Source: Blastocladiella emersonii ATCC 22665 | Taxonomy: Eukaryota; Fungi; Blastocladiomycota | Direction: 5' to 3' | Assembly (NCBI GenBank): GCA_025594325.1 | Contig: JANHCV010000007.1 | Coordinates: forward strand, 1,736,001 to 1,800,000 | Length of the DNA: 64,000 nucleotides | Part shown: in pieces, positions 49,180 to 54,432 of the stretch | How the letters are laid out: every line of letters starts with the position of its first letter | Position numbering within the stretch: position 1 is the first letter of the stretch | Program-made: the position numbers and the translations under genes | The notes under the pieces: model-generated | What the model was told of the DNA's origin: nothing | Database searches by the model: none | Seen by the model: only the letters and a program-made list of their open reading frames with translations

Positions 49180-49977
49180 ATGGCCAGTCTCCAGCACCTC
49201 GAGGGCACCGACACCACGGCGTATGTCCCTCGCCTCCCGCCCGCGATCCTCCCACACGCACCTGACGTCTGATCGCGACCGTGTAGCACCGACAACGTGG
49301 CGTACATCCAGACCCACGCGACGCGCGGCGACCCGGCGTCGGTGCTGACGGCCATGGACGCGTTCGCGCGGTCGCGCGGCGGCCTGATGCACGTGGGCGA
49401 CGACAAGGGCCCCCTCGTCGTGGAGCGGATCCTGGGCCAGTGGACGCCGACGACGGCGTCGGACGACGAACCCCTCGTCATGGTCGAGCTGGGCGCGTTC
49501 CTGGGCTACTCGGCGGTGCTGCTGGCGTCGGCGCTGCGCGCCAAGTTCCCGACGCGCAAGGTGATCCGGTACCTGTCGTTCGAGGTGGACCCCACGCGCG
49601 TGGCGGCGGCGCAGGCGGCGGCCGACTGGGCGGGGCTCGGCGACATTGTGCGCGTGTGCCACGGGTCGCTCGAGCAGCAGCTGGCGCCCGGCGGCGCGCT
49701 GGCCGACGTGCCGCGCGTCGACCTGTGCTTCATCGACCACTGGAAGCAGCTGTACAAGGCGGACGCGGAGCGGCTGGTCGCCAGCGGCAAGCTGGTGCCC
49801 GGGTCGGCGCTGATTGCCGACAACGTGATCACGCCCGGCGCGCCCGAGTACCTGGCGTATATCCGCGCGCACAAGCGGTTCGACTCGGTGCACTACCCGA
49901 CGGTCCTCGAGTACACGGACGGCAAGGTCGCGGACGGGATCGAGGTCAGCGTGTTCCGCGCCACGGACCGCGCGTGA
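49180..49977 (+). CDS. Catechol O-methyltransferase-like SAM-dependent methyltransferase; intron 49221-49286
   Basis: GDPASVLTAMDAF, LMHVGDDKG, VELGAFLGYS, LCFIDHWKQLYKAD, LIADNVITPGAPEYLAY. Confidence 0.9.
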
Positions 49978-50041
49978 GGTCGCGGTGTTTCACGTGAGGA
50001 AGACTGTACAATATAACAAGAGGAAACGGTTCTGTGTATCT

Positions 50042-50566
50042 AGCTACTCTGCCGCCTCCTCGGCCCGCTTGGCCCCGCGCACGTACTTGGTGTGGCTCCC
50101 GCGGACCGCGAGCTCGCCTTGCTCCGTCAAGATGCGGACCGACGTGAAGGCGAGCGACTTGCCGACGCGGTCGGCCTCGGCGACGATACGCAGCGTGTCG
50201 CCGTTGCGCGCGGCAGCGGTGAGGTACGACACGGCGAGGTCCGACGACACGCCCGTGGTGGCGAACCCGAGCGCGCCGATCGACAGCGACCCGGCAATGT
50301 CGACGAGCGTCGCGGACATGCCGCCGTGCAGGGCGCCGTGCAGGTTCTATCCCGCAGGTGTGAGGGCGGCTTAGGGAGAGGGTCAGAGGGTGCAAGAGTA
50401 CCAGGTGGTGCGGCTCGACACGCATCGAGCACTCGACGCGGCCCGCGGGCGTCGCCGTCTCGACCCTGAGCCCGCTCAGCAGCAGGGCGTTGAACCCGCC
50501 CTTGGCGACGCACGCGGCGAGGTACGCGCGGGCGTGTTGCAGGGACTTGGTGCAGTGGGCATGCAT
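50042..50566 (-). CDS. Acyl-CoA thioesterase 13/THEM2-like HotDog protein, copy b (1 intron)
   Basis: KGGFNALLLSGL, VECSMRVEPHHL|NLHGALHGGMSATLVD, GVSSDLAVSYL, VGKSLAFTSV, GSHTKY. Confidence 0.9.
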
Positions 50567-50581
50567 TCGCTCCGTATATTC

Positions 50582-51198
50582 TCAAGAACTCAGGGTAGCA
50601 GGGTCGACGCGCTCGACGCCGCGGACGTACTTGGTGTGGCTGCCGCGCACCGCGAGGGTTCCGTCGGTGGTCATGATGCGGACCGAGGTGAAGGCGAGAG
50701 TCTTGCCCATGCGGTCGGCGTCGGCGACGATGCGCAGGGTGTCGCCGGCGCGCGGGGCGGCCAGGTACGAGACTTGGATGTCGGCGGAGACGCCCGTCGC
50801 GCTGTACCCCAAGGCGCCGACGGCGAGCGAGCCCACGATGTCGACGAGCGTCGCGCTCACGCCGCCGTGCAGGGTGCCGTTCAGGTTCTAGGCGAAGCGA
50901 GGGGGTGTATTGGTGACTGTGGGCGGGCGCAGGGAGGGTGGCGGACGTACGAGGTGGTGCTGCTCGACCGGCATCGTGCACGCGACGTGGCCAGCGGGGT
51001 CGGCGTCCTCGACGTGAAGCTACACGTCCCACGGGTCAGCACTTGCGCCCGCACAACTGCCTCAGCGCGACAGCGTACCCGACTGAGCACGACGGCGTCG
51101 TACCCCTGCTTGGCGAGACAGTCGCGCAGGATGGTGCGGGTGTTTTGCAGCGACTGGGCGCGCGTGAGGGTGCGAGCGGCGGCGGCGAGCGGGGTCAT
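50582..51198 (-). CDS. Acyl-CoA thioesterase 13/THEM2-like HotDog protein, copy a (2 introns)
   Basis: KQGYDAVVLSR|LHVEDAD..VEQHHL|NLNGTLHGGVSATLVD, GVSADIQVSYL, GSHTKY. The ATG sits in GCCGCCACAATG. Confidence 0.9.
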
Positions 51199-51807
51199 TG
51201 TGGCGGCGGGGAGGGAGGAGCGAGCAGCACGACGGCGGGTTCGGCTTCGTCGTCGGGGCTCTTCTGCAGCAGGGCGCCGAGGACGGGGAACGGGTCGAGC
51301 GAGGTGCCCGCGCGGACGTGGAAGTAGATGGTGGTCGAGTCTGGGCTGCACACGGCGAGGATAAGGTTTGGTGGCGGGTCGGTGTGGCCCGCGGACGCGA
51401 GGGCGGCGAGGGACTCGTCGATGCTACACCGCGCTCGGGCGTGAGTTGGAGCGCATGCTTGGCGGAGTGGGCGGGACACATACGCGCCGAGCGGAAAGCG
51501 GGTCAGCATCGGCCACGCGAGGATCCAGTATTCGGCCGTGTCGGGGTGCAGCTGCGCGAGGACGAGGCACTGCGGCAGGCCGGGCACGACGATCGGTTCG
51601 GCCGACGCCCAGAAGCGCGCTATGCGGCTCTCTGCGTGTCAGCGTGCGTCTCTCAGAGCGGGAGCGGCGCCGAGTACCGTAGCGCAGGTCGGCGAGGACC
51701 TGGGCGACGTGGGCGGCGTGGCGCGGGGCCTTGGCGAGGGCGGCCGAGTCGGCGTCGTGGTGGCGGCCTCGGTGCGGGCCCGGCGTGGCCGTGTCGGGAG
51801 CGTTCAT
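51195..51807 (-). CDS. tRNA-splicing endonuclease subunit Sen15-like (2 introns)
   Basis: Spliced VAQVLADLRY|ESRIARFW..YWILAWPML..LGA|IDESL..NLILAVCSPDSTTIYFHV resembles the Sen15 LAIVxxDSTIVYY motif. Confidence 0.7.
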
Positions 51808-52382
51808 GGGCCTACGTTTGCGTGGCGCTGAGAGAGGGAGAGAACGAGCGACGCGGCGGTCATTTGCACGTTGAGTCGGCGGCGCGTGGGGCGCTCGTGA
51901 CGCGTCGCCGCTCCCAACGGCCGCGTTCGGCTGCGCATCGCTCGCCCTCCCTCTCTCACTTCCCGTTCCCCATAACGCTGAATGTATCATACGCTGCCTG
52001 CCGTGTAACTGGCAGCAACACGCACCCCACGCATCGACTCGAACGGACTCCCGAATCGGGCGCCCCCACCCCATTCCCCAGCACAGCTGAGCTCCGCCCC
52101 GGCAGCCCCCCTCGGCCCGGGCGAGCTCTCGACACGGTGCTCGGCCACTCCAGCGCATCCGCTCCGCGCGCCGCTGACGCCCGCCTGCTCCTGCCCGCGG
52201 CTCCCACGCCGCCGCCTTCGCGTTCCCCGACGCGCGACCCACCCCCGCGCACCACCACCACCGCCCTCTCGACGTGGTTCCGCCCGCCCGCCGCACTCCT
52301 CCGCCTCGTCCTGCGCGTGACCGCGCGCCGCCGCCGCCGCGCCGCCAAGTTCGCCGCGAGACCGTCCCCGTCGGGCCTTGAG

Positions 52383-54432
52383 ATGGCGTCGTTCATGCAG
52401 CCCGACGAGCCCATCGGTGCCGGAACCGCCACTGGCGGGTCCATGGACCAGCTCATGCACTCGGGCGGCGCGTCCATGGCGTCGTCGATCGGACTCAGCA
52501 ACCCGAACCTGCTCAACCTGACGGACGAGGAGCTCGACGCGCAGATCCAGCAGGCCGCGTACCTCCCGACCGCCAACACCAACGCCATGGTGGATGCGGG
52601 GACAGGTGCTGGGTCGCTGTCCATGTCCACGTCCACGGCGACCGTCACCCAGCAGCAACCGCGCGCCCCCGGTCTCACGCACGCGTCGTCGTCCACGTCG
52701 ACCATGACGGGTACGATCATGGGCGGGTCGCTGTTCCAGACGCTTCCCACTTCCGGAAACAACGGCGGGCTGGCGCCGTCGCAGCGCAACGCGTCGACGC
52801 CCGGGTTCTGCTGCAACATTGAGGTGTCGCTCGACACGCTCAAGCAGACGGTGCTGATGCAAGCGCAGGGACTCGAGCAGCAACCGCCCAACCCCGCCGT
52901 GCCTGCCGGCACGCGCACGCTCGAGGCGAGCACGGCGCTCGTCAACCTGATCCGGGTCGTCGACACGCCCAAGGCGCACGACGGGAGCGGGTCGTCGTAC
53001 ACGGCGTACGTGATCAAGTACGGCGACCGCGAGCTCAAGCGCCGGTACTCGGAGTTTGCCTCGCTGCGCAAGTGCCTGGGCAAGCTGTACCCGACGCAGG
53101 TGATCCCGCCCATCCCCGAGAAACACTCGCTCGCCGACTACGCGACGAAACAGACCCGCGCCAAGCAGGACCGCGTCATCATCGACAAGCGCAAGCGCAT
53201 GCTCCAGCTGTTCCTCAACCGGATCGCCTGGCACCCGATCCTCTCGACGGAACACCTGTTCCACCGGTTCCTCGAGCCGGGGGTGCTGTGGAGCGATATC
53301 CTGCACTCGGCCAAAGTCACCACGCTGCCGAAATCCTCGGCCGCCTCGGGGGTGGGGGGCGTGGGCGTCGTTGGCGGCGTCGTGGTCGGGGCGGGCGGGA
53401 GCGCGGGCGTGGCGGGCGCCGGGTCGTCGCTCGCGGCCTCGTTCCTGTCGACGCTGACGAGCGCGGCGACGGGCAACAGCGGCCCGCCGGCGACGGCCGT
53501 CAAGAACCCGGACCCGAAGTTTGTGCAGATCGAGGAGTTCACGCTCAAGTTCGAGTCGATCCTGCGCGACCAGCTCGAGAAGGCGCACCGGCGGCTCGGC
53601 AAGCGGTACGTCGAGCTGTCGACCGACTACACGGAGCTCGCCGCCGCGTACAACGCGCTATCCCTGTCCGAGGCGCCCGCGGTGGCCTCGGCGCTGGACC
53701 ACGTCGAGCGCGCCTTCAACCACCACCACGGGTCGATTGCGAACCTCGCGCGCCAGCTCGACGAGGTGGTGGGCGAGCCCCTGCACGAGTACGTGCAGTT
53801 TGTCGAGGTGATCAAGGGCGTGCTTCGGCACCGCACCGAGCACCAGCTCGCGTTCGAGGCGACGTGCGACGCGCTCGAGGCGAAACGCGCGTACCTCGCG
53901 CAGCTCGAGAAGATGGAGGCCGAGGCGCAGCGGCTCAGCGACGCGCTGCGACGCGAGGGGTACGTACTTCTTTTGTGGGAACGGGTGCGGGCGGGACTGA
54001 CGTTGGGGGGGGGCGTGTAGCGATCCGACGGCGACACCATCGGGCACGTTGGGCGGCTCGTCGAGCCCGGCGCCCGCCAAAAAGGCAAGCAGCAGCGGCG
54101 GCATGGGCGGCGGGTTCGTCTCCGCACTGAGCGAGCGGTTCACGGCGATCCTGGACGCGGACCCGGCGGCGACGCGGCGGCACAACCTGGCCAAGACGCG
54201 CGACGTGATGGCGCTGCTCGAGGCGCAGCGCGAGAAGCAGTCGAATGACGTGGTGCAGGCGTCGGCGGCGATCGCGCAGGACCTCGACCGGTTCCAGCAG
54301 CAGAAGGCGCGCGACCTCCGCGACATGCTCCTCCGCACGGCGCGCGCCCACGCCGAGTTTGCCCGCAAGAACCTCGCCCTCTGGCACGACGCGCGCCGCG
54401 AGGTCAGCAAGATCCCGACGGGCGAGCTGTGA
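52383..54432 (+). CDS. PX-BAR sorting nexin, Snx41/Atg20-like; intron 53960-54020
   Basis: KRRYSEFASLR..LYPTQVIPPIPEKH..KRKRMLQLFLNRIAWHPIL..FLEP, followed by BAR coiled coil. Confidence 0.9.

Follow-up and report, generated by a model that had tools for sequence, protein, structure and literature searches.

Introduction

Polycistronic transcripts and an operon are known from fungi, namely from Dikarya, where the genes concerned are separated by real spacers, and restart of translation at overlapping stop and start codons is known from viruses and a few animal messenger RNAs (mRNAs). Natural eukaryotic mRNAs that specify two full-length unrelated proteins are few, and the mode by which the second open reading frame (ORF) is translated is understood for very few of them. 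Here we describe a locus of the zoosporic fungus Blastocladiella emersonii ATCC 22665 at which a gene for a Sen15-like tRNA-splicing subunit ends on the start codon of a gene for a predicted acyl-CoA thioesterase (teA), itself followed at close quarters by a tandem copy (teB). The locus lies in a window of 64,000 nucleotides (contig JANHCV010000007.1, positions 1,736,001 to 1,800,000), to which all B. emersonii coordinates below refer. An earlier note on this DNA had proposed that all three genes share one spliced mRNA, translated by reinitiation or leaky scanning. Our search of the literature found no report of polycistronic expression in Blastocladiomycota or of polycistronic mRNAs in Blastocladiella, and nothing usable on transcription start sites in B. 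emersonii.

A gene overlap conserved in two Blastocladiella species

When the minus strand between 49700 and 52500 is read and spliced models are built, three intact, co-oriented genes emerge that have no intergenic room. Sen15 (51807..51195) begins at ATG 51807-51805, comprises exons 51807-51678, 51619-51484 and 51423-51195, and encodes 164 amino acids; teA (51198..50582), a hotdog thioesterase of the Them2/ACOT13 type, begins at ATG 51198-51196, comprises exons 51198-51079, 51019-50951 and 50887-50582, and also encodes 164 amino acids, with its TGA at 50584-50582. The Sen15 product ends ...PPPQ at a TGA (51197-51195) that sits on the teA ATG, the shared bases being ATGA (51198-51195, minus strand; context GCCGCCACAATGACC). 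The third gene, teB (50566..50044, minus strand; exons 50566-50402 and 50346-50044; 155 amino acids), follows teA after a spacer of 15 nt, GAATATACGGAGCGA (50581-50567), inside an AT-rich patch at 50560-50598. The earlier note had described just this run of intron-containing genes, with the overlap, the teA stop at 50582, the teB start at 50566 and 15 bp between them, and all its coordinates hold. Its statement that 50566 is the only in-frame ATG of teB needs amendment: there are others at codons 48 and 65, but both fall inside the conserved fold, and 50566 is therefore the only sensible start.

The closest thioesterases come from Catenaria anguillulae, Allomyces arbusculus and Blastocladiella britannica. 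In the last of these (MU624859.1, locus L003) the annotated thioesterase gene starts at 1624, and the 775 bp upstream of it are annotated as empty. A tblastn search with B. emersonii Sen15 finds a match in this 'empty' stretch, at about 30% identity over 79 residues, and thereby reveals a missed Sen15 gene (1045-1627; ATG at 1045; four exons; 135 amino acids) between a p450 gene and the thioesterase gene; its last exon alone scores 31.9 bits against Pfam Sen15. The predicted protein ends ...PGLLPHVTQ at a TGA (1625-1627) lying on the thioesterase ATG (1624-1626), which makes an ATGA at 1624-1627, and eight bases at the overlap, CAATGACC (caATGAcc), are identical in the two species. The first Sen15 intron has the same position and phase in both, and both teA introns are common to the B. 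britannica thioesterase. For all this the two species are far apart: their thioesterases are 57% identical, no closer to each other than either is to Catenaria or Allomyces, the Sen15 tail is 22 codons shorter in B. britannica, and its locus is by eye far less G+C-rich than the roughly 70% seen here in B. emersonii. Since an independent assembly has the same overlap of Sen15 stop and thioesterase start, the overlap is neither chance nor an assembly error. Judged from the gene models, a Sen15 gene and a Them2-type thioesterase gene, placed head to tail without intergenic DNA, appear to have been inherited together by both Blastocladiella species examined.

The earlier note had suggested looking for the overlap in related Blastocladiomycota, and it extends to B. 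britannica but not to Allomyces or Catenaria. In Allomyces arbusculus the thioesterase gene stands alone, with 413 bp of upstream DNA, divergent from a PX/SNX41-like gene; in Catenaria anguillulae its divergent neighbour, at a distance of 229 bp, is an ESCRT-II gene; and no Sen15 lies beside it at either locus. Sen15-thioesterase linkage was likewise not seen in five environmental or Logan fungus-like contigs reached from four further homologues, nor was there a Sen15 among the calls of a sixth fungus-like locus (from a fifth homologue), which was seen as gene calls only. A word-indexed search with the intron-retaining Sen15 ORF returned nothing, and an exhaustive phmmer search with the Sen15 core returned one true match, the fused model of the same species discussed below (KAI9176155.1), the rest being repeat proteins, so that Sen15 was not located in Catenaria or Allomyces. 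A second thioesterase search added no further Blastocladiomycota, and the arrangement is seen in two species only. Fungal polycistronic units in the sense of Gordon et al. (2015) have adjacent same-strand ORFs in a configuration that relatives conserve, and such conservation is found for Sen15 and the thioesterase, not for teB. The conserved unit would then be the Sen15-thioesterase pair, the third gene being, as far as these genomes indicate, a later tandem copy.

The surroundings of the pair also differ between species. Allomyces (L002 3490-6860) and B. emersonii (50582-54400) both have a PX/SNX41-like gene divergent from the thioesterase gene, and Sen15 stands between the two only in B. emersonii, not in Allomyces. 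In B. britannica the Sen15-thioesterase pair adjoins the p450 gene instead of a PX/SNX41-like gene.

Identity of the encoded proteins

The spliced Sen15 product matches Pfam Sen15 (PF09631) at 25.5 bits against a gathering score of 22, covering positions 1-95 of the 101 in the profile, whereas retention of the second intron lowers the score to 16.7 bits, below the threshold. In a search of PDB sequences all six Sen15 matches were to TSEN15 and spanned the whole domain, although they were weak (E 0.035-0.24). The core reads ...VLADLRYARFW...DTAEYWILAWP...LILAVCSPDSTTIYFHVRAGTSL, and the domain ends near residue 134, to be followed by a non-conserved tail of 30 residues ending PPSPPPQ-TGA. G+C content at the third codon position (GC3) is 0.91-0.95 in all three genes (Sen15 0.91, teB 0.95), and within the Sen15 tail codon position 2 has the lowest G+C, the same as in the Sen15 core. 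Upstream of its ATG the teA frame is open, but this extension contains no ATG and has a GC3 of only 0.50, and we rejected it as coding sequence.

The thioesterases teA and teB score 55.4 and 54.4 bits on the 4HBT profile (cut-off 20.6) and 51.9 and 50.3 bits on TIGR00369 (cut-off 36.6), and teA matches Them2 in the PDB at E 7.5e-25 (4ord) and 6.9e-23 (2f0x). Both are predicted to be PaaI/Them2-type hotdog acyl-CoA thioesterases. The motif N..HGG..LVD, which has a catalytic role in Them2, is kept in each. Any functional link between tRNA splicing and the thioesterases is conjecture.

The deposited fused gene model

In GenBank the locus appears as a single gene, KAI9176155.1 (H9P43_006520, 'hypothetical protein', 450 amino acids), in which Sen15, teA and teB are fused by way of two predicted introns; the deposited sequence is identical base for base with window positions 40044-61807, and the fused gene corresponds to 51807-50044. 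Taken at face value, this model would mean that splicing makes one Sen15-hotdog-hotdog protein of the three ORFs, or that an alternative isoform unites some of them. Its first fusion intron (51230..51154, minus strand, 77 nt, GTGCTG...CAG) has two features in its favour, a CTCAC branch-like motif 10 nt before the AG and a 3' end that returns to the frame precisely where the conserved thioesterase core (SLQN...) begins. However, the annotation was produced by funannotate from ab initio predictors (AUGUSTUS, SNAP, GlimmerHMM, GeneMark-ES), and RNA sequencing is not mentioned in its description (PMC9730499).

We compared the fusion introns with nine that can be trusted, five of them at this locus and supported by homology (51677-51620, 51483-51424, 51078-51020, 50950-50888 and 50401-50347, all on the minus strand) and four being single introns of neighbouring genes without which the annotated protein length cannot be recovered. 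All nine start with GTA, end with TAG and measure 55-66 nt. The first fusion intron breaks all three rules, as does the second (50608..50570, minus strand, 39 nt, GTCGAC...GAG). The first would moreover remove the teA residues TLTRAQ, which align with VTKAQ in Catenaria and ISRAA in Allomyces, and since exon 1 of the B. britannica thioesterase gene contains no AG at all, an equivalent intron is impossible there. Near the end of teA the sole consensus donor, GTACGT at 50630, gives an in-frame junction only if the conserved N-terminal helix of teB is lost. Both fusion introns are probably not real introns; a fused product seems to us highly improbable, and we treat KAI9176155.1 as an apparent artefact of missing intergenic space. 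A double-hotdog protein made by splicing teA to teB was considered separately and rejected, every in-frame GT..AG pair across the teA stop having either a non-consensus donor or the loss of that same helix as its price.

Beyond correcting this model, the comparison shows how ab initio predictors can hide such loci by inventing introns, which makes them invisible in public annotation; because the B. emersonii annotation is ab initio, other tight gene pairs may be hidden likewise. Judged by the nine, the introns of this species appear very uniform, with a 5' GTA(C/T)(G/T)(C/T) and a CT(G/C)AC branch motif 10-25 nt before the 3' TAG, and this signature could be used to filter doubtful B. emersonii gene models.

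The tandem copy teB

The two B. emersonii thioesterases share 64% amino-acid identity, with about 0.5 synonymous substitutions per synonymous site (dS) and a ratio of non-synonymous to synonymous rates (dN/dS) of 0.56. Identity to the outgroups is 53-54% for teB as against 57-61% for teA, and teB has thus diverged faster; no second thioesterase copy was found in B. britannica, Allomyces or Catenaria. teB has no counterpart of the first teA intron (51078-51020) and retains the second, which indicates a precise intron loss in the tandem duplicate.

Its faster divergence, the fairly relaxed pairwise dN/dS and the lack of visible promoter space in front of it could all be accommodated if one member of the locus were not expressed as a protein: teB might be a recent copy that is decaying and has no promoter, or the Sen15-like ORF might have no role beyond that of a long regulatory upstream ORF (uORF) for the thioesterase. 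We think this very unlikely on both counts. At a dS of about 0.5, teB still has an intact ORF of 155 codons with a correct intron and a GC3 of 0.95, and Sen15 has kept its domain at a level that passes the Pfam threshold, together with its intron positions, in two deeply diverged species.

The stop codon of teA and the ATG of teB are in the same frame (TGA GAA TAT ACG GAG CGA ATG, that is, a stop followed by EYTERM; 50584-50564, minus strand). Read-through of this TGA would yield a tandem double-hotdog protein; a shared frame is expected by chance in one case out of three.

Composition and RNA structure at the gene junctions

Readings of promoters and terminators offered here draw on base composition and on a small number of neighbouring genes. 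Between 49900 and 52500 a scan for AT-rich 20-mers finds only three patches. The first (51966-52000), some 160-190 nt ahead of the Sen15 ATG, is in the divergent gap (51808..52382) that separates Sen15 from an SNX41-like PX gene starting at 52383 on the plus strand; the earlier note had named this shared gap as the obvious promoter, and it is likely to be the promoter region of Sen15. The second falls in the gap after teB that is shared with a convergent methyltransferase gene (Methyltransf_24; 49180-49977, plus strand), where an AT-rich 3'-end region spans 49986..50052. The third coincides exactly with the teA/teB junction (CTACCCTGAGTTCTTGAGAATATACGGAGCGAATGCATG). Similar AT-rich islands, with TATA/TGTA motifs, occupy other convergent 3' gaps of the window.

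Only 66 bp (49978-50043) separate the stop of teB from that of the methyltransferase gene, while other convergent pairs in the window have about 90-215 bp between their ORF ends, measured from stop to stop (56646/56739 and 25311/25429 are examples). The 3' untranslated regions (UTRs) of teB and its neighbour must therefore be very short, unless they overlap in antisense.

Between Sen15 and the end of teA the same scan finds no terminator-like patch, and because of this the Sen15 mRNA may be expected to run into teA; as far as composition can tell, it very likely carries teA sequence, and probably the whole of teA. For the second junction the opposite applies. The spacer between teA and teB lies within an AT-rich patch of the kind seen at 3' ends, which argues that transcripts may well end there and that teB would be expressed differently. 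The earlier note had seen no room for a poly(A) signal or promoter between the genes, and intergenic room is indeed lacking among all three. A functional tricistronic mRNA that includes teB, as originally proposed, we regard as unlikely.

The 40 nt before the thioesterase ATG form a pyrimidine-rich, G-poor tract in both species. In B. emersonii this tract (51199..51238, minus strand) encodes the end of the Sen15 tail and has a C+T fraction of 0.75; in B. britannica the C+T fraction is 0.72 and that of G 0.10. Equally pyrimidine-rich 40-nt windows make up 0.64% of gene bodies in B. emersonii and 0.2-1.7% in B. britannica, and the annotated 5' leaders of neighbouring genes resemble the tract before teA in composition. 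The 80 nt centred on the ATGA fold worse than 197 of 200 shuffled sequences in B. emersonii and 196 of 200 in B. britannica (z +1.96 and +1.88), and in the 80 nt upstream folding does not surpass that of shuffled sequences (z 0.06 and 0.87 in the two species). Both composition and structure would say that the teA ATG is a working initiation site, leaving aside the route by which ribosomes come to it; the leader-like tract fits a nested transcription start site as well as it fits reinitiation.

This brings in the explanation that competes most closely with coupled translation, namely that the genes are overlapping but independent units. On this account teA would have its own start site in the pyrimidine tract and teB its own inside the 3' end of teA, both giving capped mRNAs that are translated by normal scanning; teA would merely lie within the long 3' UTR of the Sen15 mRNA, and the ATGA would be a frozen accident handed down from the common ancestor. 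The leader-like 40 nt preceding the ATG in both species, rare as such windows are in gene bodies, speak for it, and so does the terminator-like patch at the teA/teB junction. In Allomyces (413 bp) and Catenaria the orthologous thioesterase gene stands alone and has an upstream region to itself, so that a thioesterase core promoter could have survived under a newly arrived Sen15. Fungal genes that are co-transcribed are also known to be transcribed independently (PMC4503453), and reinitiation after long ORFs is rare (PMC5972666). It fits less well that the genome is not compact and does not force promoters into coding sequence, that the teB ATG is preceded by only 15 nt without a C+T-rich tract, and that both species stop Sen15 on the thioesterase ATG in spite of a 22-codon difference in length, when an earlier stop would be neutral if the tail were free to vary. 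Independent units are a serious possibility, one that we would place short of an even chance.

Discussion

The reading that we favour, tentatively and at a little below an even chance, is that Sen15 and teA are a conserved candidate for a translationally coupled bicistron; the gene arrangement is what suggests it, and we infer from it both a bicistronic mature mRNA and a step of reinitiation. A spliced mRNA, transcribed from the promoter that Sen15 shares with SNX41, would carry the complete Sen15 ORF followed by the complete teA ORF. Ribosomes would finish Sen15 on the UGA of the AUGA and restart on the overlapping AUG, in its unstructured, pyrimidine-rich context, by termination-reinitiation, and the product of the restart would be thioesterase a as a separate protein. 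A later tandem duplication in B. emersonii would have placed teB 15 nt behind teA, where it might be reached by occasional read-through of the terminator-like junction or through a start site of its own. Coupled translation and independent nested units are not mutually exclusive, if the Agaricomycete loci are a guide, where both kinds of transcript are seen (PMC4503453).

Several considerations make coupling credible. With 10,031 genes in 34.27 Mb the B. emersonii genome is not compact (PMC9730499), and crowding is therefore no explanation for a Sen15/teA spacer of zero length. Both lineages stop Sen15 exactly on the thioesterase ATG despite large in-frame changes in the tail, which we count against pure accident. 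In termination-reinitiation governed by termination upstream ribosome-binding sites (TURBS) the stop and restart codons overlap or lie within a few nucleotides, and the ATGA places them so in both species. Yeasts and filamentous fungi can reinitiate after full-length ORFs when the spacer is very short, one of 9 bp being sufficient in yeasts and Aspergillus (PMC10352335), and termination-reinitiation can be induced in yeast (PMC11952965). Restart at AUGA or UAAUG is found in fungal viruses and in some cellular mRNAs, such as that of CASQ2, which lacks TURBS-like elements (PMC5972666). Tandem duplicates, for their part, are enriched among the polycistronic transcripts of Agaricomycetes (PMC4503453).

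Against this must be set that eukaryotic reinitiation after long ORFs is in general rare and inefficient (PMC5972666). No TGGGA or GGGA (TURBS motif 1) occurs within 150 nt upstream of the junction in either species, nor does either have a stable conserved structure there. The last 40 nt of the Sen15 coding sequence look like an ordinary 5' leader or initiator tract in both, and a nested promoter fits them equally. The orthologous thioesterase is a stand-alone gene in Allomyces and Catenaria, the teA/teB junction resembles a 3'-end region, and an in-frame overlap kept across two species only is statistically weak.

The mechanism can nonetheless be narrowed. Tethering of the TURBS type is ruled out by the sequence, there being neither (U)GGGA within 150 nt nor stable structure in the two species. 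Leaky scanning, which the earlier note had offered beside reinitiation, is not borne out as a conserved mechanism: ATGs inside Sen15 are not depleted (one against 1.27 expected in B. emersonii, four against 4.55 in B. britannica), and the Sen15 start has a strong context, AAAATGG, in B. britannica, the weak CCCATGA being confined to B. emersonii. The absence of premature stops from the Sen15 tail was considered as a test of selection and set aside, as only about 1-1.5 stop-creating changes would be expected by our own estimate and their absence is not significant; it is not used as evidence.

A second ATGA lies at the other end of Sen15. An upstream ORF of 19 codons (51863..51804, minus strand; MTAASLVLSLSQRHANVGP and a stop) has its TGA (51806-51804) on the Sen15 ATG (cccATGAac), which makes two consecutive stop/start overlaps at the locus. 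By a rough estimate an upstream ORF would end on the Sen15 ATG by chance with a probability of about 0.3, and its position inside the transcript is putative.

The most specific form of our proposal is a Blastocladiella nuclear bicistron in which a full-length Sen15 ORF of 135-164 codons is coupled to a Them2-type thioesterase through a conserved AUGA stop-restart that needs no TURBS-like element; stated so fully, it is possible but doubtful. Were it true, prokaryotic ATGA coupling would have a counterpart in cellular genes that contain introns, the connection of tRNA processing with acyl-thioester metabolism seen in vertebrate RPP14/HTD2 would have an independent parallel, and the 19-codon upstream ORF would point to routine stop-restart translation in B. 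emersonii. Whichever way expression proceeds, the Sen15/teA overlap is a clean, small test case, made up of two intron-containing housekeeping genes in deeply diverged zoosporic fungi with roomy genomes, and it could show whether fungal ribosomes restart after an ORF of 164 codons without special RNA elements.

Comparison with known systems

The overlapping stop and start codons, the long upstream ORF and a restart at the site of termination all recall established cases of termination-reinitiation, including the TURBS of caliciviruses and influenza B, the UAAUG of a hypovirus, the AUGA of a victorivirus, and GAD and CASQ2 (PMC5972666, PMC2699510). Unlike the TURBS-type cases, the Blastocladiella genes are cellular and contain introns, and they have no UGGGA/TURBS and no stable upstream structure. 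The polycistronic loci of green algae (PMC7896298, PMC11291117) are similar in being nuclear, spliced, composed of several ORFs and conserved between species, but the hallmarks of leaky scanning are not conserved in Blastocladiella Sen15.

Among fungi, the polycistronic units of Agaricomycetes (Gordon et al. 2015, PMC4503453) and the glpks3-glnrps7 operon of Glarea lozoyensis with its IGG spacer (PMC4471562, PMC10352335) also consist of co-oriented nuclear genes with little between them. They resemble our locus further in their enrichment for tandem duplicates and in a gene order that is kept in relatives, and for the IGG spacer reinitiation of the downstream ORF has been demonstrated. These systems belong to Dikarya, have real if short spacers and came to light through transcripts, whereas the Blastocladiella arrangement is a 4-nt overlap in Blastocladiomycota and is known from the genes alone.

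HTD2 of vertebrates has a hotdog fold. The nearest biological parallel would seem to be the vertebrate RPP14/HsHTD2 pair (PMC4705651), in which a small tRNA-processing subunit is likewise encoded upstream of an enzyme of thioester (fatty-acyl) metabolism on the same strand, both proteins being full-length. In humans the second ORF is situated in the 3' UTR, where Blastocladiella has an ATGA overlap, and bicistronic expression is experimentally established there, while we have the genes alone. Nor are the proteins homologous: the upstream product is RNase P p14 in the one case and Sen15 in the other, the downstream product a dehydratase and a Them2-type thioesterase, respectively. That a tRNA-processing subunit is paired once more with an enzyme of thioester metabolism echoes RPP14/HTD2 all the same, and may merit a functional look. 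Set beside these systems, what is new in Blastocladiella is best filed as a conserved gene pair with a 4-nt overlap in an early-diverging fungus.

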